A stretch of DNA of 64,000 nt from Paragordius varius. Lineage: Eukaryota > Animalia > Nematomorpha. The translations under genes and the position numbers were made by a program. The first letter of the stretch is position 1. Each line of letters begins with the position of its first letter. Positions 6,488 to 60,876 of this stretch are shown one piece after another. The notes under the pieces are model-generated. The model saw only the letters and a list, made by a program, of their open reading frames with translations, was not told the origin of the DNA and searched no databases. Where the stretch lies: NCBI GenBank assembly GCA_964247055.1, contig OZ176055.1:3162001-3226000 (forward strand), read 5' to 3'.

Positions 6488-9400
6488 CTCTAATAGCAAA
6501 ATGTATCAGAATTACATGGTGCTTTTTTGGCGCTTACGAGTATATTTACGTTTTTTCTTAAGTGCCCCACAGAAAATGGCGATTTGCATGCGTTTTTTGT
6601 TTAAAAATATTTTTGGTGAAAATTAAATGTTTCATTCCAAAAAAATCACCAAAATATCTTATGAATTACCTAAAAAAGCAAAACAACATTTTTTTAAAAA
6701 ATTATATTAGAAAGGGCTCCGAAAGTCCCAAATTTATTCGCTCTTCTAAAGTGGGCGAGATCTTTTAAGTAAACGCAAAAATGTTGGGATTGCGCGATAA
6801 ATATATTAAAAATATGCTAAATATTCATATCAACCAAAAATATTTTTAAAAATGTATACATACTTTTTTAAAAAAATAATTTTTAGCAAAATTTTGTTGA
6901 AGCGTACTTTAAACTTTGAGGCATGATGGAAATGGTATAAAAACGTTTAAGATATTATAAAAAACACTTTTTCTATTAATTTTAATGTTGAAAATTTCTA
7001 TTAGCTCAGAATTTTGATTAAAGTATTCGTTCGACTTCAAATATATGTTAAATATAAATTGCATAAAAATAAACAAAATTTTTAGGCAAACGAACCTTTA
7101 AATTATCATTTTGAAGGGATATAAATGTTAGGATCATTGAATTATATAGAGAAAGTATTTTCATCATGCCTAAAAATAGTAAGTACGCTTCAACAAAATT
7201 TTTCTAAATTTGAATTTTTGAAAAATGTTTACAGTTTTTTAAAAATATTTTTGGTTGATATCAAAACTTAGCATATATTTACAATGTGTGCGTGATTCCT
7301 GCGTTTTTGCTTTTATTATAAGAGTACTAGCCCATTTTAGAAGAGGGAAAAAATTTGGGACTTTTGGAGCCCACATATAAAAAATAATTTTTTTAAAAAT
7401 ATTGTGTCGCTCTTTTTATATGTAATAATATATTTTAGTGATAAAATGAATACTCTAGCTTTCACCAAAAAATTATTTAAAAAAATATGCGCAAATTTTT
7501 TTCTGATATGAAAACTTAGCACAAAAGTGTGATTAACTTTCTTATATCACTCGTAAGGGCCAAAACCATAAGTACCATGATAATCATGATAATTTTCCAT
7601 CAATAATTTATATATATAATTCAACAGGTTATTACTAGGTCATTGTGTGGTCTCTTTTTCAATTCATGTTCCACACTTTTAGCAAATTCCAGTTTTTGGC
7701 AAACTTATTTTCATCAGTTACGAAAAATAAAGTTCTTCCACATATTGGTGGAGAATGCGTAAAATAATAAAAAAATTTAAATTATTCTTTTCAAGTAAAA
7801 ATTTCTTGAAAAGCCTTATTTTGCCATTACATTCATCGATCTTTTATTTAAAATGTGGTTTTGAAGCATTTTTCCAATAAACATATCAACCCATTCAAAT
7901 AAAAATTCAATATTTTTTAAATTATATCAGCTATTCAAATAAACCTAGCTTATTAATCTCCCAGTTTGTCCCAATTGAGACAAACGCTGTGCGATAATAT
8001 TAAATTTATTATTAAAAAAATTTATGGGTATATAGATATTAAAATTAAATTATTTTAATAGTATTTGTATAATGGCACTAAACAATGAATTAGTAATTAG
8101 ATGGATGGAAATATTTAAAATTATATTTTTTTCATTTGTTTAAATTTCATATTATAAGTTTAATGCTTAAAGATATATTGTTTCATTCAGAACTAGTATT
8201 GAAAAATAAAGAGTTATCATTCTTTTATTGTTAAGGATTTGGCTTAATGGCTAAATAACATCCGAGATAGTTTTTTAGAAGTTATATGTAACTTTCATTA
8301 TTAATGTTATAAAAACTTCTAAATATCTTTAAGTTGCTTGATAATAATCAACATGCAATACTAATTGGTTTATAGGGATGCTTTTTTCTAATTAGTGGAA
8401 ACTGTCAATATAAATAAAAAATCAAAATTTCTTAAAATATAAGTTTATGTTTCAAAACTATTTACGGTGACTAGAGTGTAGAGATTGGGAAAAGTTTTGG
8501 TAGGATAAGAGGGCCGCATATATTCCGTCGTAACGCCTTGCTTTTTAAGGTCTCGTAGAAAAGTTTTATCCCAGTACTTAAAGTATTCTGGGTTAAATCC
8601 ATCAAACGCCATAAGGATTACGGGATATCTGTCAAATCTAATGAAAATGAATGAAAATGATAATATACAGTAAAAATAGAAATTATACAGAAACAAAATG
8701 TATAAATAGAAAGATAAATATTTTTTTTTCAAAAGACGACTGTATTTCTTTTAAGCTTTATATAGGAAATTAAAATGTAAATTATCGTTTTAAGTTACCG
8801 ATAAAAGAATAAAAATGTCAATTGGTATTACTCTTAATCATATATACACTGTGTGCAAAAAAATTTTTAACAAAAAATTAGTTTTTCTTGAGAGAGCTTA
8901 TGACCAGCGTATTCATTTGCCGCAAAAATTTTTATTTGTCGACAACCTAGTTTTTGAAATATTGAGAGAAAATCGAAATCGGGCAAAAAGTGAAAATTAA
9001 GTATAATTAAGGATAATTCAAAAAATATTGATAAAATTTGAAATATTATGGTTTATTATCATTTTAGGAGATATTTTCAATATATAAATAGCCTAAAATT
9101 ATATAGTTAGGGTTTCTATAAAATTTCAGCCCAAAAGATGGCGTTTTTCTTTTAACACATTCACAAGACAAATTTTGTTTATAAAACTAGATTAATATAA
9201 TTTTTTTTAATTATTTACTACCTGAACTCACTATTACAATCTTAACATCCATATTTTATTCAGTAAAAAAACTTATATATTAAAATAAAACCAAAAAATA
9301 TTGTTTTTTATTTTTACATTTTTTTGTCATCTGGTTTATTTTCTGTTTTATTTTGGAATCTTACATGAGTGCGAATTATAAAGGATATATTTTGATATAT

Positions 9401-18939: not shown

Positions 18940-20965
18940 ATATAATCTCATCGATGTATATATATATATATATATATTCCAATAAAAAAGTGTATCAGGA
19001 TCAAAAGTGCGTTTAATTTTAGCCCTAACAAATAATTTATAGTTTACGTCGTCAATATCTGAAAATGGCAAATTCTGCGCACATTTTGCTAAACAAATAT
19101 TATTGGTAATTGCTAAATACTTTATCTCAAATAATCACCAAAATAAATTATATACTACAAAAATAATCTTAAAAAAATTAATTTTTAGATGTGGGCTTCA
19201 GAATATTATTACTCTTATAAGATAGGCTTGTTGTCTTTAAATAAATTTAAAAATGCCGAGTTTGCCAGCTACTACTTTAAATATATGCTAAATTTTTAAA
19301 TTAACTAAAAATATTAAAAAAAATACCTTCATTTGCCATTTCGATGTTTTGCAATTTTTTTTTCAAAGTATTTCATAAATACTTCGAGGCATAATGAAAA
19401 CGAAATCTGCTTAAACACTTGGATACAACACATTTATTTCAGTCCTTCGATTCAAATTGGGTAGTTATATAACCCATGCCTGTTTAAAATTAAATTCTTA
19501 AAAAGATACATAAGGAATCGGAATCATGACAAAATTTTGCACTTATATAAGATTAAACCGAAATAATATAAATTTTATTCAAAAATACTAGATTTTCTTT
19601 AAGCTAAAACTGAAAGGTAATTTAGTCAAAGTGACATGTGTGCAATTTTCTAACGCTTTAGATTTATTGAGTTATATTGATGTATTTTGATAAAAAAACA
19701 CAATTTATTTTAACATAATTTTGAAGGCGTAAGATATTTTTAAAATTTTTGGATAGCAGTTTAACATCATTGAATTATATGCAAGTATTTATATAATGTC
19801 TTAAATCCGTTTTATACCTGCGTCATGGCGCAAAATGCAAAAAACCAATTTTTAAAAACATTAATGTATTCAGTTGATAAGTGCTGTCCGACGAGTTGCA
19901 TGAATTGAAAGAATTGGTGGGTAAATGGATTGATGTGTTACGACGATGTGGATTAAAAGTTAATAAAAAGAAAACGGAACTGATAAAATTTGTCGGGAAA
20001 AAACGAGAAATAGAATTAGAAGAAGGGTGGGTATTAAAAGGTCAGGAGGAATGCAAATATTTAGGAGCGATTTTAGCAGCAGATGGTTCTTTAACAGTTG
20101 ATATTAATTTAAGAATTCGAAATAGTTGGGCAAATTATAAAAAGATTTCAAATGTTTTGTGCGACAAAAATATTAACCTAAAAGTAAAAGGTAATTACAG
20201 TGCTGTTGTACAGCCAACAATGATGTAAAACTCACAGACATGGGCAATAAAGAAATCGGAAGAGAAGCACTTCGAGGTTACTGAAATGAGAATGCTTAGA
20301 ATGATGTGCGGTGTAACGGGAATGACAAGGTGAAGAATGCCTACATAAGAGGAAGTACGGAAATCAAACCGGTAACGTAAAAGATGATGGTAAATCGTTT
20401 AAGATGGTTCGGACATGTTGAAAGAAGAGATAATAATTACATTGGTAAAAAGATTGTTGATTATATTGTAAAAGGCAAGAGGGGAAAAGGGCGCCCTAAA
20501 AAGCGATGGATAGATAGAGTTAAGAGAGACATGGCACTGAAACTAAAACGCGAAGACGCCTTAGACAGGGTTCTATGGCCAAATATTTACGGATATGACC
20601 GCTCGAAAGAGTGATATCATATAATGTAACTATTATTATTATTGAGTTTATATTAAATTTAAAATATATTTAAATTTTTATCGCGTGGTTGCGTTTATTT
20701 TTTAAAAAAAACTAGCCAATAAAAAAGCGATAAGACATTCGGAGCCAATATCTTAAAATTATAATTGAAAAAATTATTTATCTGGAATAAAGCATTTGGC
20801 TTAGGCCGAAAAAAATTTGTTTTAAAAAGGTGAATTTTGCCATTTTTGGTTACAAAAAAATGTAAATAACTGTCTTATAGATCATTCGCACTGAAACTAA
20901 AAGTACCATGATAATCCAGATTTCTTATCTTATTTAATTTCATCAGGTTATTTGTGGACACTGTG
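18940..20965 (+). mobile_element. Transib-like element (family D) carrying a nested piggyBac-MITE fragment (~19415-19640) and an RTE fragment
   Basis: The left part 18990-19350 matches 6490-6900. The right part 20700-20965 matches 7300-7647 and ends CACTGTG. Confidence 0.65.
19878..20643 (+). mobile_element. 5'-truncated, decayed RTE-type non-LTR retrotransposon
   Basis: RT-end motifs (GLKVNKKKTE, KYLG, RIRNSW) and the RTE C-terminus NRLRWFGHVERR...GKRGKGRPKKRW. It has in-frame stops, a frameshift and a (TAT)n tail. Confidence 0.92.
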
Positions 20966-34177: not shown

Positions 34178-36298
34178 CATGATGATGATGTATCGTCTTT
34201 GTGTAATGGCTGGCCATTGTATCCGTATAGAAGCTGTCTGTAATATTTGCCATCCTGCCAGTCGTTATCATCAATGTTGGCAACACCAATCCTTATTTAT
34301 TGTTTTTTTCCAGTTAAATATTGGTCTACCCCTGCACCTTCGGGATGTAGGAAATTTTATTTGTCCATTGTTCTGCAGCGTTTGATGTGTCCGAATATAT
34401 CTAAGCCTATTTTTTTGGAGCATAACATTTAAAGGTTCGATTTGGTACAGTTGATGCAAATTTGAATTTGACATATTGGGGTCGAATAAATTTAGCATCT
34501 GCTTTTCTATGTTCATTAGTTTTTTCTCGATTGAATCTGTCATCGGCCACGTCTTGCTTACATACAAGAGTATGGGACGTATGCCGGCTTTGTAAATCAA
34601 ACCTTTGTTTTTTGCTATGTATTTTTTTTGAGCACAAATTTAAGTTGATGATTTTACCAGCCTGTTGGGATCTATAATTAACCGACTGGTTTATTCCACC
34701 TAGGCAATGTATGACATCGCCCAAGTATTTAAAATTATTTACCAATTCAATTTTGGCGTCTGCCATATAAAGTTATTGAAGTGGGTGACTAATTTATTGT
34801 TTTATTTTTGTTATAAGCAAGCACTTATTGTGTACCTACTTATTGCATGATATCCATAGGATTGAATTAAATTTTACATCTAAATAATATATCCTGGAAA
34901 CTTAAGTCGTTTATATACAGTTTCACCCGTTATCAGCACCTTTGTTTTACTTATGTTTATCCTCCTTCCACCCTTTTCTAAGTGTGATTTCCATGTGTTG
35001 TACTTTTGATTTGATTCCTCCATTGATGTTGCGGTGAGGACAATGTCGTCCTCATAGATAAGTTTCTATGGTGGGCCTTGTTTTATATCTTTTGTTGGGT
35101 AATCGATTAAAAAAGTGAAAAGTAGAGGGCTTAGGATGGAGTCTTGATGAAGACCAGATTCGTTTGGAACAAAAGCTGTGTTGCCTAGTGTTAATCGGAC
35201 GCAGTTTGTTGTTTTCTAGTAATTATCTACGTTGTTGACTCGTAGTGTGGATGTGATTAACTTCCTGGGGTTTCAATCAACCCTTTGTAAATCAATAAAA
35301 ACATGATAAAGTTTTTTATTTTTCGCTAAATAATTCTCTTGCAATCTTCTCAAAATGAAGATTGCATCAATTGTGCTACTGTTTGGTTTATAGGCATTTT
35401 GCGAGTCCTGTATGCTAATGATTGAACTTAGTTTTAATTCAATAATGGATTCAAAAATTTTTAACGGGGGTTAGTGGTCTGTAGGAGGAACAAACGAGTT
35501 CTCCTTTGTTTTTATAGGTATGATGGTGCTTTTTTACCGATCATTAGGGATGCGATTCGTTGATAAGATTAGATGAAATATATTAGTTAAATGTGGCATT
35601 GGGGTAAAGCTTTAACCATGTCGGAGCTGAGTTCACATGAACCACTTGCTTTGTTATTTTATATCTTGGCCAAGGCATCTCTTACATCGTCTGTTGTTAT
35701 CAATGGTCGGGGACCAATTGCTGGTGGTTGGTTTATTGTTTCAAAATCATGTATTTGTGCGAATTGTTTTTGGTCCCAGACATTGCTTATGTTTCTCCAA
35801 TCAGATGCTAGATGATTGTGTTTATCTTTAATATATGAAATTTGTTTAATGTCCTTTTTATTATTGCTAACTGAATTTATTGTTCGGAAAATTTTGAAAA
35901 TTTTCATGTCTTGTTCTAGTTTTTTAGCTAAATCCAAAGCTTAGTCGCCTGAAATATTGATGGCTTGTTGTAAATTTATATTTGATTTGATATATGAATA
36001 TAAGTCTCTTCTATCTTTTCTTTGTTTCCATCTTTTGTACTTATTGCGTTTAATTTTGATTAAAGGTTTTATGGAATCTTACCACCACAAATTTGATTGT
36101 TGTTTTTTCCTGTATATTTTCTTTTTGCCACAAAAATTAAGTACATTTGGGATTCTTTTTAAAATTATCCCAAGCTTGTTCAGATGTTTTGTGGTTGAGA
36201 CTGAGCGTGGCATTAGAAGTTTTTAGGAGTTGAAGTTATCAGGAATGTGTAGTTTTTCTAAGTTGGATTTCTGGTTACTATGGTAATAGGATTTTTTT
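34178..36298 (-). mobile_element. Decayed RTE-type non-LTR retrotransposon
   Basis: Minus-strand RT motifs FIDL (~35290), GLHQDSILSPLLF (~35140), LIYEDDIVL (~35050) and FKYLGDVI, plus a GRPIFNW C-terminus and a (CAT)n tail. There are many stops and frameshifts. Confidence 0.9.
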
Positions 36299-37905: not shown

Positions 37906-38270
37906 TTACATAAAATTTTTAACATTAATGTCATGATGATATCGAGGTTTGGATTGCTGAGAAATTGTCCTATTACTTTGTATTAGTTGTATCTATGAAA
38001 TAAATTAAATATTACATGTTGCCCTTCTAAAATATGTTTCGCAGTTGCAATTTGACCCATACAATTATCAGCCATAGTTATGAAACCGTACCCTTTACTT
38101 AGTCCTGTAGATTTATCCTTGTTTATTAAAAAAATCTTACAAATATGACTTGAGAATACATAACGTTTCCAAATTTGGAGAAATAATCGCGTAATTCCCC
38201 TAGCATTATTATTAAACTTACTTCTTCCTACAGTCCACGGTAACCGGTTTACAAATAATTTAAAAACCAT
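37906..38270 (-). CDS. SLIRP: SLIRP-like single-RRM RNA-binding protein
   Basis: Exons 38270-38222, 38199-38141, 38117-38016, 37992-37906 give MVFKLFVNRLPWTVGRRELRDYFSKFGNVMYSQVIFDKSTGLSKGYGFITM...KHILEGQHIQL. The FVxRxPWT, FDKxTG and HILEG motifs match SLIRP. Introns are 22, 23 and 23 nt. Confidence 0.88.
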
Positions 38271-41164: not shown

Positions 41165-44100
41165 ATGTCATTATTAAAACCCTATAATTTATGGAAGCAA
41201 AAAAATGTTTTAAGCAATATCATATTCCTCCGATTGTTACGTTCGTCATACAATTTAGCAGACTTGAAAGTATTCACGAAAAAACCATCCGCACTTTCTG
41301 AGCCCGAACATGTTACTTATGATGCTAGCCTTGTTAAAAAACGAAAAAGGTCAGAAATGCCGAAAGGACCGTCTTGGAATGTACCCTTACTCGGTTATTT
41401 TCCATTTATGACCAAAAATCCTCACATACATTTCTATGAATTGATTCAAAAGTATGGACGTATCTATAGTTGTAAGTTTGGTCGTAATCCTGGAGTCGTC
41501 CTTAATGATTGGGATGACATAAAAGAAGCTTTTGTGACACGTGCGAATCAATTCACAAATCGACCACTTGTTTACACCTATAGATTGGGTAGCCAGGGTC
41601 ATGGTATAAATTTAAGTTTATATAAATAAAATGTTGTGTATTCAGTACATTTCTATCTTTAAAAATGGTCGACATCTTGCTTTAGTATAACTGATTAACA
41701 TCGGATTATAATATTCGTTCCAAATATAGGGTATAATATTTAAATAGGTGAAATTAAGCAATGAATTTTTTATGTCAAATATTTTAAAACTACCCTATCA
41801 ATTTACTATTTATTTAAAATTTATTAAAGCATCCGTACAAGTTGTCAATATATTAAGACAGTAAGTCAAATTCGTTTGAGGTAATCTTGCCCTCTTATAA
41901 AATATCTTATGGGGATAGAAAATACTTTTCTGGTCATTTTGATATCATTATATGTTTAATTAAATTATTTTATCATTGATAACAATTTGAGTTTTATGGA
42001 CTATTATGGCCATGCGAATGAGTCATGTGAATAAGCCGACTCAAGTGGTTATCATGTCCTATGTTTTAATTTTAAGATTTTCAAACTTTGTTGAATCACA
42101 TAAATAATTGCTTGAAAGCTTCATAGCGTAGCCGCATTCATCAAAATTCGGGACTCACTTCACTCATATGGCCCTATTTATCACAGTGATTGTGGGGATA
42201 ACATAATTTAATATGCGTATCATCCTTTTTTGAAATATTAGTATACAAATAAACGGATCAAACAAATTAAACAAAAATGAATGCATTTATTTTTAATTGT
42301 TTTTGGTTTTTGTTACTCCAAATAACCAAAAAATTAGTTATTTGTGAAAAATAAAATTCACATTATTAAGATAACTGCCCTATTTTAAAATCAAAAACCA
42401 TGATTTAATTAGTATATAGGCGCTGTTTGTTCTTAAAAGCTTATCAGGGATGAGACGCGGTCATTATTGGAGTGTCTACTGTATTTAAGTTTTGTTTAAA
42501 TTGTTAATATTTTGTTTCAAATACTTCTAGTTAAATTTTCTTTATTCAAGCATATATTTAATTATTAGATTATAACCGTTTAGGTTTTAAAAATTGTTTT
42601 TACCGGGACTAGGGTTCATTTTAATAGTTCAATATTTTAATAAGTTTATATGTTCATGTATGTACTCTCAAAAGGTATAATACAAGCAGAAGGATCCTAT
42701 CGAAAAAATCAAAAGAAGTTTTTGATCCAAGCCATCAAAAAAGTCAACGATAATCCCAACTTCATCGCATTTTTAAATAACGAGGTAAGTCAATTTTACT
42801 TTATTATTTTGGAATTATTTCTTTATATGTAAAATGTAGATGCTTATTAAAAAATATATTTATAACGAGAATAGTTGAACCTAATGGCCCACTTTCCCCT
42901 TATCATTATAGCGCTTTACTAATTTTTTTTGCGCTTTATAGATTCTTTTTATTCTAACAAACCAAAAAGCTTATGGTGTTGCCAGTTATACAGATGGTTT
43001 CGGACCGAATTTTCGAATAATTTGAATTTTTAATTCATAGCATTTGATTAATTAATGCTGTTATCAATTTCTATAAATATATCTTACACTAGTCGACAAA
43101 TTTGGACATTTTTGAGCACCACCACTCAAACTTTTAAATTATGACTAATTTCAGTGTTTTAAAACCGAATGTGAAAAAATTTTTGATCCCGCCAATCACA
43201 ATTTTGAAATATTATAGGTTTTTCAATTTTTCAAAAACAAGAGAAAATCGAGAGAAAATTAAATATAACTTTATAATAAAATGTTTTTATATTATAAACT
43301 TAATATCATTTATTAAAGCGTTTTAAACTCTATCTTTTGAATATAAATATGTCATTTAAATATCAGAGAGAAAAAAATAGTACCGACTTAAACGTCAAAA
43401 TTTAGCCTTTTACTTTCAAGTGAATTTTTAATACGTATAAAAAAATTTAAAAAATACTAAAAATGGCATTCTATGGTTTAAACCTTCGGCTTTCAGATAG
43501 GCTATATTTTTTTTTGTTAGTTTTCGTTCTTTCGAGTACTTATTAGGCTTTTTTTCTTGAGTTGGTTCCTACAAAAAATCCTTTATTTATACCTAGTGGA
43601 TATACTTTATTTTTTAAAATTATTGGTTGTTTTGTATTTTTAATTTGAGATGGATGTTGTGTAGCCACTTTTAGTAGAATTTACTATTATGGGATTGGAC
43701 CATTTGTATTTACCTAATCTTTTTATTCAATTTAATTGTAGAATTTATCTAACTTTATTCTGTCAATTGGTTAATTTGACATGTCAATTTGCCTGGATTT
43801 TGCTTGCAAGTCTCTCTTATCGGGCTTTACGATTACTTATTGTTCTCTTTGCCATATCTGGCATAATCGGATCGCTTGGGGGATATGCAGAGCTTGTGCA
43901 GCCGCCCGGATCTATCACACTATACATAAGCCCCTCTTAGATTTTAAATACTTTGGCTCTTAGCTTGTTTAGTATCTTATTTAATGCCTGTAATTTTTAT
44001 TTCATGCATGGAATATTACTTGTATCGACTTGTTCGTTCGAATTAAACATATGTACACGAGGAATGATTGTTATTTTTAAATTAAATGCAAATTTAAAAA

Positions 44101-47100
44101 TTAAATTTCGGAAAAATCCTATTGGTGGCCTCAATTTTCTTTTTTGTTTTGGCCTTTCCATGCCATTAAATATCAGAAAATGCAAAAATAATGGGGTGGT
44201 GCAAAACCTTGTTGAGCAGTGTTATTTATATATTTTCTTCTTTCGGCAAACACCAAAATGTCTATTATTGCATTTTATTATTTGTAGCCTTAGTTTAAAG
44301 TTTTGCCCCCTTTAAGTTTGGAATTGTTGATTATAGGTATACCATTTACAGCTCAAATTCACCCTCGAACAATGAATTCACCCTGAAAAAAAACTAAGTC
44401 TGTTCGAATATTAACTACATTTAGGGTAAATTAGGGTAAATTTTAATTATTCAAGGGTGAATTTGATTGTTCAAAGGGAAATTTGAAAAGTTCAAAGGTG
44501 AATTTAAATTTTTCAAGGGCGAATTTGAGCTGAAAATGTAATATTATAAAATTTCTAATTATAAATTTGCACAATAACTTTCACTATCAATCAATCTATA
44601 TCCTTAGATCAAAACATTATGCGAAGCCATTGATTCTTTGATTTCCAATCCATCAAATAGGATTTACAGGGATCGTAAAACAAAAGAAATTTACCGAGAG
44701 ATCGATTTACGAAAGTTAGTGGAGAGATGTTTCATAAATGTGGCGTGTGGTTTAGTGTTTGGGTATCGATATGATTACACTTCCGAGGAGATTACCCATT
44801 TCATGCATGAAGTGGAGAAAAATTTTGAGTTAGTAGGTAATAGTTTGCGTAAAATATAATTATTTATAAAACGTTTTTATAAATCAATTTTTAGGCCAAA
44901 AAACACAGCCTCTAAATGTACTGCCACCATGGTTAAGAGACACAACACTAGTTAGAAAATTATTTGCATACGAAGAATTCTTCGAATCCCTAAACTATAT
45001 GAGCCGGTTTATGCTGAAACACATAGCTCGAATAATTAATGAACGTGAAGCAGGAGGTTTTATACCTTTTTTGGTTAATAAATGATTTATAGGCGTCAAA
45101 TTTTTTTAATTGTATTTCTCAGTATTCACACTATAGTTGGGCGATTTGCAACATATTAGTGTAAGGAAAAAACAATAAAATATTGAAAAAAACAATTTTT
45201 TTTTCTTTTTTCCATACACATTTGTTGCAAATTGCCCAACTATAGTGTGAAATAAACAACAGCGTGTTAATTCTGATAAAAAAAATAGATTTTTCGGGTG
45301 ATTTTGGGAAGATATATTTAAGTATTTATCCGTTACTGTCTCTAATGTCATGGCTTATAAATAGATCAGATGTTTAGCACATTTAGCTTTGTGCTTTTAA
45401 TACGCTTGTATCATAATTTAAGCTTCATTACTTAAAAAACCAATATGAGATGTTAAAATTATTTACAACCTAACAGTGGATTAGAATAAAGGCAAAATCG
45501 CTAAAACATTATAATATATTATATTTATTATTCTCCCTAGTAATCCGTAAAGATAGGCCCTTATGCCTGGTGGACATATATTTAGATAAAATGTATAATG
45601 ATGAATCGCAATTCGGATATGCTGGGTTTGCTGGTAAATCATTGGATTTTGTTGTACCTCCAAAGCCATTAAATATTTTAAAAGAGTTGACTTCACAGGG
45701 CTTTATTCAAGAATTTATTACGGGTGAAGAGTTAGGGCTTAAATTTATGGAGGATAAGGATAGAATTTTACAGACACCATCTTTTAGTGGGAATGCAATC
45801 GAAAAATCTTACAAAGAATTTTTGGTGCGCGGTAACGTTCAACAAGGTTTCACAGGTTTTTGTTTCATAAAAAAAACTTTTGATTTATTCATAGGTTATA
45901 TAATTTAGATATTATATCTAGTTTTACTCATACAATTTATGCTCATCAAAGTTTGTTTATAATTTAAAAGTAATATCTGCTCAATTCCTACCTATTATTA
46001 TTATTATCCAAAATTTTATTTTACTTCTCACATCTTATAATATAGGTGCAGATATGATAGCTAGTTTAATGGAAATATTTTTGGGTGGGACAGAAACTAC
46101 TGCGGCTGTAATGCGATGGGCCCTTTACCATATGTCTATGAGACCTGATATTCAGGAGTCCGTTTTCGAAGAAATTGACAAATTTAACACAGCAAATTTT
46201 GTTGCGAATGCGAAAGAATCGGTACTAGAAAACTTTACTTTTCCTTATGAGCTGAAAGATGAATTACCTTACAGTCAAGCAGCTTTGATGGAAGTTCAAC
46301 GTCGAGGTAAATACTATATTGATTATTATATTAAGTTTCAGTTGGTTATAAATTAGTAATTTTAAACATTTTTGTTATCTTATTCCTATCAATATATTTA
46401 TTTGATATTAACTTTAGATATTGGAAAATATATGAGGCAATATCAATATTTTTAAAAAATGTTCCAAACTAGTACAGCTTATTAGTTTTTGTAAAGAGAC
46501 AAATTAAAATTTGTCGCTTTATCGATATCTATCCATAATATTTAATAACGCTTCCACATCTTTTTTTGTTCACATTTAGCCTCAGTGGCACCAATTGGAA
46601 TTTTTCATGCAACCTTGTATGAATGCCCAGCCTTCAAAAAAACTTACCGAATACCTGAGGGAGCCCATGTCGTTTCCAACATCTATGCCGTACAACATGA
46701 TGAGAGGTATTGGCCAAACCCATTTGAAATCATGCCTGAGAGATTCCTTAAGCCACACACATCCGAAAATAGCGTTGTTGATGGTATAAAAGAGGAAAAT
46801 ACACCAAGTTCGAAAGAAGTGAAATATCAATATACGGAAGCTAAACCCAGTCTTATGCCATTTTCTATAGGTATATATAGATGCAGACAGATGTTTAGTT
46901 ACTTGTGCGTTGAATCATCATATAAATTTTTATAATAAAAGCTTTCTACAAAGTCTATCATATATAAAAATATTCATAAAATCAACTCGTAAAATCGATT
47001 TCTTATGCATATCTATCTATCTATATTATTTTACCGCACAAATCTAAAAGGGTTACGAACATGTATTGGTCAATCAATTGCAAAAAATGAATTATTTGTC

Positions 47101-56766: not shown

Positions 56767-57907
56767 CACTAGTCGACAAATTTGGACATTTTTAAGCACC
56801 ACCACTCAAACTTTGTAAATTATGACTAATTTCAGTGTTTTAAAACCGAATATGAAAAAAATTTTGATCCCGCCAATCAGAATTTTGAAATTTTATGAGT
56901 TTTTCAATTTTTCAAAAACAAGAGAAAATCGAGAGAAAATTAAATATAACTTTATAATAAAATGTTATTATATTATAAACTTAATATCATTTAATAAAGC
57001 GTTTTAAACTCTATCTTTTGAATATAAATATGTCATTTAAATATCAGAGAGAAAAAAATAGTACGGACTTAAACGTCAAAATTTAGTCTTTTTTTTTCAA
57101 GTGAATTTTTAACACATATAAAATTTTTTTAAAAAAATACTAAAAAAGACATTCTATGGTTTAAACCTTCGGCTTTCAGATAGGCTATATTTTTTTTGTT
57201 AGATTTCGTTCTTTCGAGTACTTATTAGACTTTATCTCTTGAGTTGGTTCTTATAAAAAATCCTTTATTTATACCTAGTGGATATACCTTATTTTTTTTA
57301 AAATTATTGGTTGTTTTGTATTTTTTATTTCAGATGGATGTTGTGTAGCCACTTTTAGTAGAATTTACTGTTATGGGGTTGGACCATTTGTATTTACCTA
57401 ATTTATATTCAATTTAATTGTAGAATTTATCTAACTTTATTCTGTAAATTGGTTAATTTGACATGTCAATTTGCCTGGATTTTGCTTGCAAGTCTCTCTT
57501 AACGGACTTTACGATTACTTATTGTTATCTTTGCCATATCTGGCATAGTTGTAGGATCGCTTGGGGGATATGCAGAGCTTGTGCAGCCGCCCATATCTAT
57601 CACACTATACATAAGCCCCTTTTAGATTTTTAATACTTTGGCTCTTAACTTGTTTAGTATCTTATTTAATGCCTAGAATTTGTTATCCATGCATGGAATA
57701 TTACTTGTATCGACTTGCTTTTGAATATTTAAACATATGTACACGAGGAATGATTGTTATTTTTGAATTAAATACAAATTTAAAAATTAAATTTTGGAAA
57801 AATCCTATTGGTGGCCTCAATTTTCATTTTTGTTTTGGCCTTTCCATGCCATTAGGTATCAGAAAATGCAAAAATAATGGGGTGGTGCAAAACCTTGTTG
57901 ATCAGTG
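56767..57907. mobile_element. Tc1/mariner-like non-autonomous element (~1.14 kb), copy 2
   Basis: CACTAGTCGACAA...ATCAGTG|TA, collinear with 43087-44221. Confidence 0.75.
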
Positions 57908-58713
57908 TAATTTAGTATCAATAACATGTAATTATTTCCCAGATTCAAAAAAGAATATTGTAGACAATATTAACTTTATTAAATTAACTTTAATATATAA
58001 TTTATAATTTAATTTATCACATCAAAACCATTTAACTTTATTTTTTTGCTACCAATGAGTTTTACACAAGGTGGTATCTTGTAAATTTCTTTAAAAAATA
58101 TCTATAATAATTTTCTTCAATACTTGGAAATGACTTTAACACAATTATCTTTTGTAAGTTACGGCGATATAATATAATTTTTAATAGATTTTGTAATATG
58201 GTTTTTGAGATCGCGTGGTGAAAATAAAATTAATTTACCACATAATTAAATTCAGAAAAATTCCCGAATTCTGGTTCCGAAAAAAATCCGAAAGTGTTTT
58301 TCAATATATCTTTAAATAATAATTTATTCATCTCAAAAACGAATTGATTTTTTTTCACCAGTTTGCTTCTAAGTACAAATAAAATTATTTATGCAAGAAA
58401 AGGCAAAGCCAATAATTGTTTTGCTATAAAACAACAACAATATATTAATTGTAATAATACGTATAGCATATGAATTAAGTTAAAAAAATCGAGATTTAAT
58501 CCCTATAGATTAGGTAATATTTCTAAGCACCAATAAAGTTGAATATTAACGCACAATTATAATTAATTAAGCAACTTATATAGACAATCAAATTTTATAC
58601 CACCTTGGCATTGACTGTAATACTTAGCGGAAATGACACATTAAAAAGAATTCTTTAAAAAAGATGCCAAATAATTTAATGTGATTCCTAACATCATTAT
58701 AATGAATTTTAAA

Positions 58714-58853: not shown

Positions 58854-60160
58854 CATTAAAATGCATATTGTAAAAGCGATTGGATATAAATATGTATATC
58901 ATTGATATGAATTTCAAAATCTTTATGGGTTTTTTTAGAATATGATCATTAAATAATTCAAGTTTGTTTAAAAACTAATCGTAATCCTAGATAATTATTT
59001 ACAATGTATACGTGGCTATTTTTTCATTTAATACTGCCAGATAGCATATCCAAATGAGAGAATTATTATTAGTTAATAACAAAAATAAACGAAAGTAATA
59101 ACTATAAGGCAATCATAGTTTTGCTCTATATGTTATCTTGCAATAATTAATGAAAAATAGCAATGTATACTTGCTCATACTGTATTTAAAGGCAATGAAT
59201 GGTTCCTTACCCCTTTTCTCTATTTTTTTCGTAACACCTTCTAAAAATTAAAACCGCGTAGCTTCTTAATTATCCATTCATTTTTTAAACAGTTACAAAA
59301 TATAATCATTGTTCGGTTGAATAAACCGGTTTAAGCTCCGATGTAAAATTATAGTATATAATATTTATATCTGTGCAATATATTGATATTGCGAATTTAA
59401 CAAAAATGTTTTAACGATTAAAATGTAATAGTATATTATTTAATCGTGATTTATTAATTTTTTTGGATGCAGTTCACTTTATAATGAAACTTTCGGGCTA
59501 TACTAAAATTAAAATTTATTAATTTAAAATTAGATCCCGGTTTTGAACTTTGTGTTTCGATTCAATAAAACAAAAATTTTTTACATATTAAATTTTACCT
59601 AAACCATTTGAATCTATTTATCATCCAATTTTATGTGTGCCAACATAAGCGCGATATCGGCGATTTCGAATTATAAAAATAATACTCCTTTTTCCCAAAA
59701 TTTTATATTTGAACAGTTTGATTGGAAAATATATAACCTGTTTCAAATGAACTGCACACTTTTTCAATACTTTTCCAATCAAACTCATTACTTAATTTTA
59801 ATCAACTCAATTTTTTAAAATAAAATAATAAACAATTTATATAATCACTAAATCTTGAAGTTTTATCAATGTTTAATTTATTAAATTGCATCAATGTTAA
59901 AGTTTCGGTTCAAAAAAGAATGGCCTAAAAAACTTAATTTAAATATTTTGACCAAAAAATTAAAAAAAAGATTAGGGGACTCCACCTGCTTTTCAACCTA
60001 AAATAATTTTTTAATAGATCAGTTGTCCAAAAATAAGTTATAATTTTAGTGGAGTTTGATTGAAAAAAGTATAGAAAATAAAAACGCATCAGCAAATTTT
60101 TTTATGCATATCTTAGATATGAGCAAGTTCAATAAATTAGTACGACCGTGTCATTCAAAA

Positions 60161-60434
60161 ATGGAGGGACCTTCAAAACCGTTTTGTAGTACTCTTTTAT
60201 TGTTTGGAATTTTGGTTGTTAGCCTGTTAATAACTACAGTGAATTCCCAATTTTTTGTAAAAATGGACAAGGTCCTACCGCCGTTAGGGAGACGGAGTGG
60301 AGAAGAATATGCAAGTAAATTAAATTTTATACATAAAAAAGTAAAAGAGCGAAAAATCGTGTTGTTGAAAAAAGTTAAATTAATTATAAACCATATCTAT
60401 GAAATATCAGAGTTTTAATGGTTTTGAAAATTAA

Positions 60435-60476
<42 letters not shown>

Positions 60477-60876
60477 CTACAATTTAAATTTTCTAAGCTA
60501 TTTTAACCTGTCCAATCATGGTTAAGATGCAAATTTATCCATAATTGATTATTTAAAATAATATATATTAACTCTTTAAGTTTATATTTAATGGACACTC
60601 CAATAAAGTTTTGATTTATAAGCTTGCTTTGACATCAAAATTATCACGATTTATTCAAGCTAAACCAAATTACCATAATTTTATATTAGGACCCCTGGAG
60701 TATAGTAAGAAGATGAAACCCTTATTAAGAAGTTTTTTAAATGCGGAACCCGGTTATCGAAAAGACGCCAATCGATTGAAATTAATTAGAGAGCTACAAA
60801 ATAATTATGGTAACAAAATACAATAATTTGTTTTTTTACAGGAATATCATTAAATTGTTTTAATGGGTCCAGTTAA
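60161..60876 (+). CDS. ETH: Ecdysis-triggering hormone (ETH)-like neuropeptide precursor
   Basis: Exons 60161-60314, 60690-60809, 60842-60876. The signal peptide (MEGPSKPFCSTLLLFGILVVSLLITTVNS) is followed directly by QFFVKMDKVLPPL-GRR, an amidation plus dibasic site. This aligns without gaps to the FFLKITKNVPRL-amide core of Drosophila ETH1. Confidence 0.78.

Follow-up and report, generated by a model that had tools for sequence, protein, structure and literature searches.

Does a horsehair worm carry a hormone of the ETH type in which the residue that defines the family has been replaced? The question is raised by a short gene of Paragordius varius that lies near one end of the window (the whole 64-kb stretch of DNA that was analyzed) and encodes a predicted peptide ending in Pro-Pro-Leu, where ETH would have Pro-Arg followed by a hydrophobic residue. 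To our knowledge, this Arg is invariant in the ETH, pyrokinin, CAPA, and neuromedin U ligands. A natural ligand with Pro in place of Arg would provide a ready test of how essential the Arg contact of the PRX-amide motif is, and the presence of an ETH-type gene in Nematomorpha, sister phylum of the nematodes, would bear on whether the peptide control of moulting is ancestral to the moulting animals. The 2019 survey, in which horsehair worms were not sampled, placed the origin of eth in the panarthropod ancestor and reported none outside Panarthropoda (PMC6660194). That view is countered by the 2024 NP-HMMer preprint, at least by what it describes in its Fig. 2E, where an ETH is predicted that is most likely priapulid (10.1101/2024.07.20.604414).

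Gene structure and predicted processing

The gene model comprises two exons with a total of 96 codons on the forward strand (60161-60826), and its features are given in Table 1. Reading from the ATG at 60161, exon 1 encodes MEGPSKPFCSTLLLFGILVVSLLITTVNS, then QFFVKMDKVLPPL, Gly, the pair Arg-Arg, and SGEEYA, where the exon ends. The first-pass annotation had quoted six codons across the C terminus of the peptide and its processing site, and rereading 60278-60295 returned exactly these: CCG (60278-60280), CCG (60281-60283), TTA (60284-60286), GGG (60287-60289), AGA (60290-60292), and CGG (60293-60295). It had also described a single peptide copy placed directly after the signal peptide, which agrees with the model, as the spacer that follows Gly-Arg-Arg is a mix of acidic and basic residues running on into exon 2, and inspection of the exon 2 sequence revealed no second amidated or PRX-like peptide. 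No paralogue of the gene was found elsewhere in the 64-kb window.

Table 1. Features of the P. varius peptide gene, in window positions.
Feature	Position	Strand	Basis or remark
Start codon and predicted signal peptide, M1-S29	60161..60247	+	n-region MEGPSKPF, hydrophobic core CSTLLLFGILVVSLLITTV, V-N-S before the cut
Predicted mature peptide, Q30-L42, QFFVKMDKVLPPL	60248..60286	+	expected pGlu ... Leu-NH2
CCG, Pro41, at the position of the PRXamide Arg	60281..60283	+	sequence
GGG AGA CGG, Gly-Arg-Arg, amidation donor and dibasic cleavage site	60287..60295	+	sequence
End of exon 1, where the precursor-associated peptide begins: SGEEYA and first base of Arg52	60296..60314	+	sequence
Intron GTAAAT...TTATATTAG, 375 nt, 20% GC, contains a (TA)n microsatellite	60315..60689	+	GT donor after 60314, phase 1
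Exon 2, (R)PLEYSKKMKPLLRSFLNAEPGYRKDANRLKLIRELQNNYGNKIQ and stop	60690..60826	+	Arg codon completed; TAA at 60824-60826
ATTAAA, candidate polyadenylation signal, 23 nt 3' of the stop	60849..60854	+	sequence only; weak in so AT-rich a genome

The start at 60161 is provisional. Its context, AAAATGG, with A at -3 and G at +4, is better than that of the two additional in-frame ATGs that lie upstream (60105 and 60120), and all three would yield an identical mature peptide. The intron acceptor is the AG at 60688-60689, which is preceded by TTATATT. Other ways of splicing were considered and rejected. Splicing out either of the two GT...AG stretches located around the peptide in exon 1 (16 and 31 nt) would disrupt the frame and abolish the peptide, and both stretches are GC-rich, unlike the introns of the P. 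varius window. A micro-intron of 27 nt (60315-60341) directly after the donor is ruled out by frame-breaking indels located just downstream in the second haplotype.

We propose the following route from this precursor to a hormone. The 96-residue product would enter the secretory pathway and be cut after Ser29, exposing Gln30, which would cyclize to pyroglutamate. A prohormone convertase would cut at Arg44-Arg45, a carboxypeptidase would trim both of these Arg residues, and peptidylglycine alpha-amidating monooxygenase (PAM) would then use Gly43 to amidate Leu42, giving pQFFVKMDKVLPPL-NH2 as the expected final product. Its calculated monoisotopic masses are 1543.87 for [M+H]+ and 772.44 for [M+2H]2+.

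Haplotypes and read depth

The replacement of Arg by Pro, which the first-pass annotation had put forward as the main peculiarity of the peptide, was confirmed by a check of the reads. The two Pro codons (CCG CCG, 60278-60283) are unchanged in the contigs of both haplotypes in X1 and X3, which are DNA samples from two studies, with the proviso that X1 may be the source sample of the assembly and hence not independent support. The haplotype contigs of both samples branch at 60290, and the X3 contig that covers 59979-60289 has no differences. At the branch point the second haplotype has C for A, changing AGA to CGA, which is synonymous and keeps the Gly-Arg-Arg site, and the sole polymorphism of exon 2 is A to G at 60739, which converts TTA to TTG and leaves Leu. 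From 60321 onward the second haplotype carries four substitutions together with insertions totalling 11 bases in the intron, and these indels would break any frame that reads through, thereby supporting the intron. Neither haplotype has a disrupted open reading frame, Gly-Arg-Arg site, or splice site. That both of the coding polymorphisms (n = 2) are silent, compared with dozens of changes in the flanks, has a probability of about p = 0.06 under neutrality and, in this small sample of two polymorphisms, suggests purifying selection on the peptide gene.

The depth of X1 over the gene is about 390, the same as that of the unique flank, and we therefore consider the gene to be single-copy. None of the RNA runs contains the stretch, and the few candidate RNA runs labelled with the same species hold next to none of its words. 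Two further runs, X6 and X7, labelled as two other organisms, contain short contigs of depth 2-3 that are identical to the locus (59831-60717), as would be expected when the DNA of the animal rides along in samples of its host or habitat.

Composition and chance expectation

The intron and the flanks have GC contents of 20% and 22-23%, respectively, and the exons are richer, at 39% in exon 1 and 33% in exon 2; across the window the GC content varies from 22 to 34% with a mean of about 27%, which matches the 26.93% of the Gordionus montsenyensis assembly. At third codon positions the GC content of the gene is 32-33%, as in the P450 and ENPP exons of the same window, and because of this agreement with resident genes the peptide gene looks native.

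To express how often such a peptide would arise by accident, the frequency of the motif was calculated from the six-frame amino acid frequencies of the window itself, in which F and K each account for about 9% of all codons. For the strict motif FFxKxxKxxPx[LIVM]G[KR][KR], 290 Mb of six-frame translation should yield 0.12 occurrences by chance, and for a looser version with 5 of the 6 core residues about 10. A context resembling a signal peptide, defined as a stop-free Met, a hydrophobic core, and agreement with the -3/-1 rule within 10 residues upstream, is present at the peptide gene and at only 0.15% of window positions, as judged by a home-made heuristic (h-region plus -3/-1 rule) and not by SignalP. 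Multiplying the two rates leads to a joint expectation of about 2e-4 (strict) to 0.015 (loose) per genome. The 12-mer FFVKMDKVLPPL, when compared with Anopheles ETH1, scores 33, the highest of the 51,959 stop-free 12-mers of the window, the next being 28, and among the 35 window 12-mers that precede G[KR][KR] the runner-up scores 6. Against published ETH peptides its scores range from 24 to 33, with p = 3e-5 to 3e-4 by peptide shuffling. A chance origin of the ETH-like motif together with the signal context is very unlikely, and we are highly confident that this is a real gene, with a product predicted to be secreted and amidated.

Relation to ETH and other PRX-amide peptides

The C-terminal -Pro-Arg-X-amide (X = I, L, V, M) is absent from the predicted peptide, which ends -Pro-Pro-Leu-Gly-Arg-Arg. 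In the PRX-amide frame, Pro occupies -3 and Leu occupies -1, and only the Arg position differs. The same is seen with the extended ETH core FFxKxxKxxPRx, to which FFVKMDKVLPPL aligns without gaps, with F, F, K, K, and P identical and the Arg alone failing, and the precursor has the layout expected of the family, with a signal peptide (by the heuristic) and a Gly-basic processing site after the peptide. The published peptides used for comparison were the insect consensus FFLKASK[NS]VPRIamide (PMC9853942), AgETH1 of Anopheles, which is SESPGFFIKLSKSVPRI-NH2, the C-terminal 12-mer of which has almost full activity, dependent on F7, K9, and K12 (PMC9273798), and decapod ETH, which is DAGHFFAETPKHLPRI-NH2 (PMC13234976). 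QFFVKMDKVLPPL shares 5 of 12 residues with each of two insect ETH consensuses, the Anopheles ETH1 12-mer, and decapod ETH, and all of these alignments have the same register, anchored at the C terminus.

Like the arthropod ETH peptides, the horsehair-worm peptide is predicted to derive from a secreted precursor in which a Gly and a dibasic pair serve for amidation and cleavage, and it has the register F-F-x-K-x-x-K-x-x-P-x-(L/I)-amide with conservative V/L/I changes. Specifically, the F, K, and K that Anopheles ETH1 needs for activation of the mosquito receptor are all present, and the predicted peptide corresponds to the 12-residue active core with a pGlu cap. The peptide differs from arthropod ETH in having Pro for the PRX-amide Arg, in its N terminus, which is pGlu directly after the signal peptide, and in that it is known from DNA alone and from a bearer that is probably not an arthropod; moreover, insect precursors usually contain two peptide copies whereas this one contains a single copy. 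Decapod ETH shares the FF....K.LP.(I/L)-amide register and presents the reverse situation, lacking the first Lys and having the Arg, while the horsehair-worm peptide has the Lys and lacks the Arg. The pyrokinins (FXPRL-amide), the CAPA peptides (FPRV-amide), and the molluscan pleurin/sCAP peptides, which act via related rhodopsin-type GPCRs, are likewise short and amidated with Pro at -3 and a hydrophobic end, but they are without the FFxKxxK helix, have an aromatic residue before the Pro, and all retain the Arg. Outside Panarthropoda the comparison is with the ETH predicted for Priapulus caudatus in Fig. 2E of the preprint cited above, an ETH-type peptide to which ours is likened by description rather than by sequence. 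Since the defining Arg of the PRX-amide motif is absent, we class the peptide as ETH-like and probably an ETH-derived variant, outside the ETH/PRX-amide family proper.

Searches for relatives were carried out with exons 1 and 2 separately, not with the joined 96-residue protein. A word-indexed protein search with exon 1 in its read-through open reading frame, for which precursors of 47-149 residues were eligible, gave no match. An exhaustive phmmer search with exon 1 against 1.84 billion representatives revealed no relative; its only two matches (P0001 and P0002) were rejected as translated tandem-repeat artefacts with scores summed over the repeats. A metagenome scan with the exon 1 peptide gave 597 pattern matches, of which none was confirmed, and Pfam and NCBIfam had nothing above noise for either exon. 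Look-alikes from a language model all scored ≤0.83, and the only eukaryotic families they named were small prohormones, which we take as a lead only. Blank searches are expected for an exon of 51 residues and speak neither for nor against ETH ancestry. In the literature searched there was no peptide family ending in PPL-, PPI-, or PPV-amide, and no paper linking ETH with Nematomorpha. The description of an ETH-like neuropeptide in the first-pass annotation holds in part: the ETH frame stands far above background by score, shuffling, and motif expectation, and orthology with ETH is the less certain part, the peptide being too short for sequence searches, none of which returned a relative.

Proposed origin and alternative explanations

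On balance, we favor the explanation that this is a single-copy, two-exon prohormone gene encoding a diverged peptide descended from the ETH branch of the PRX-amide peptides. Descent from that branch would account for the core FFxKxxKxxP-x-(hydrophobic)-amide, which would have been kept along with the layout of non-insect arthropods, namely one copy directly after the signal peptide. The ancestral Arg would have become Pro by a single base change, CGG to CCG, and the peptide would serve as a hormone or neuropeptide for a rhodopsin-type GPCR with a pocket that has become independent of the Arg contact. Counting against ETH descent are the absent Arg, a likeness that spans only 12 residues in a genome that favors F and K, and the fact that there is neither cross-species conservation nor a phylogeny, relatives not having been found in the searches run. 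The same considerations lend some weight to a different explanation, that this is a real amidated neuropeptide gene of a lineage-specific or undescribed family unrelated to ETH, the resemblance being due to convergence or coincidence. The family-defining Arg is missing, the searches link the peptide to nothing, and F and K are each as common as about 9% of six-frame codons. Yet all six of the other core positions match in the exact register anchored at the C terminus, three residues needed for activation of an ETH receptor are among the matches, the shuffling probabilities are 3e-5 to 3e-4, and the literature searched offers no PPL-, PPI-, or PPV-amide neuropeptide to which the gene might belong instead, and we regard an unrelated origin as rather unlikely.

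It is improbable, in our judgment, that the gene is nonfunctional, whether a chance open reading frame or the remnant of a decaying gene whose expression or processing has ceased. Against it stand the joint chance expectation of about 2e-4 per genome, the integrity of the reading frame, Gly-Arg-Arg site, and splice sites in the two haplotypes, where the coding changes are exclusively synonymous, and an exon GC content that approaches double the values of the intron and flanks. In its favor, no RNA run contains the stretch, no homologue was found, the protein collections searched do not include the gene, and an ETH gene in decay might lose its key Arg in just this way. A further possibility is that the worm secretes the peptide as a mimic of the ETH of its arthropod host, perhaps one captured from the host, that acts on or blocks the host ETH receptor instead of serving signaling within the worm. 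Horsehair worms are manipulative parasites of arthropods, inside which they develop, the identical low-depth contigs in runs X6 and X7 labelled as other organisms are as expected for a parasite, and an analogue with Pro for Arg could in principle be an antagonist. This we hold to be very improbable, as the overall composition and third-position GC content match those of resident genes, the intron is AT-rich in the native manner and there is no sign of recent transfer, while the likeness to insect ETH is limited to the 12-residue core and the second ETH copy of insect precursors is missing. ETH ancestry in the broad sense, that is, with the variant as a mimic of the host included, seems to us reasonably probable.

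If the peptide descends from the ETH branch within the worm's own lineage, as we favor, its meaning extends beyond this gene. We tentatively suggest, while regarding it as somewhat doubtful, that horsehair worms retain an ETH-type hormone that works without an otherwise invariant Arg, that ETH predates Panarthropoda and was lost in nematodes such as C. elegans, and that a re-tuned receptor pocket is implied, as the first-pass annotation had supposed. If true, this would be a natural experiment on the replacement of a deeply conserved contact between a peptide and its GPCR. A receptor gene was looked for and none is located within the 64-kb window. A role of the peptide in moulting is conjectural.

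Neighboring features of the window

Genes flanking the peptide gene include ZNF830 and, 13 kb upstream, a multi-exon cytochrome P450 gene (41165-47265, + strand). The P450 is assigned to the CYP2 clan because CYP2R1, CYP21, and CYP17 are the closest among the solved structures. The CYP2 clan includes arthropod ecdysteroid enzymes. An exon resembling ENPP (type I phosphodiesterase / nucleotide pyrophosphatase) is present at 8445-8732 on the - strand, and the longest open reading frame of the 64-kb window matched no record. Over the stretch 59400-60000, just upstream of the peptide gene, contig depth in the likely source run is raised to 2-4 times the roughly 390 of single-copy DNA, with a maximum of about 1,500, and this stretch is therefore considered to be repeated in the genome. 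Two open reading frames on the + strand (43953-44315 and 57669-58007) share a near-identical stretch, NICTRGMIVIF.LN.NLKIKF.KNPIGGLNF.FCFGLSMPL.IRKCKNNGVVQNLV, which looks like a dispersed repeat with one copy in the span of the P450 gene and one between the P450 and peptide genes. Judging from their translations, the open reading frames at 19881-20228 (+) and 34271-34766 (-) look like reverse-transcriptase fragments of retrotransposons.

A small RRM gene, SLIRP-like (37906-38270, - strand), contains three GT...AG segments of only 22-23 nt (GTAAGTTTAATAATAATGCTAG, GTAAGATTTTTTTAATAAACAAG, and GTAATATTTAATTTATTTCATAG), and the RRM frame is kept when all three are removed. Its nearest RRM relative, in a Logan sample, has 39% identity, and on the short contig that carries this relative an ACBP-ankyrin gene lies no more than 70 nt downstream (L001 208-1262, L002 49-1100), an arrangement that is very compact or possibly polycistronic.
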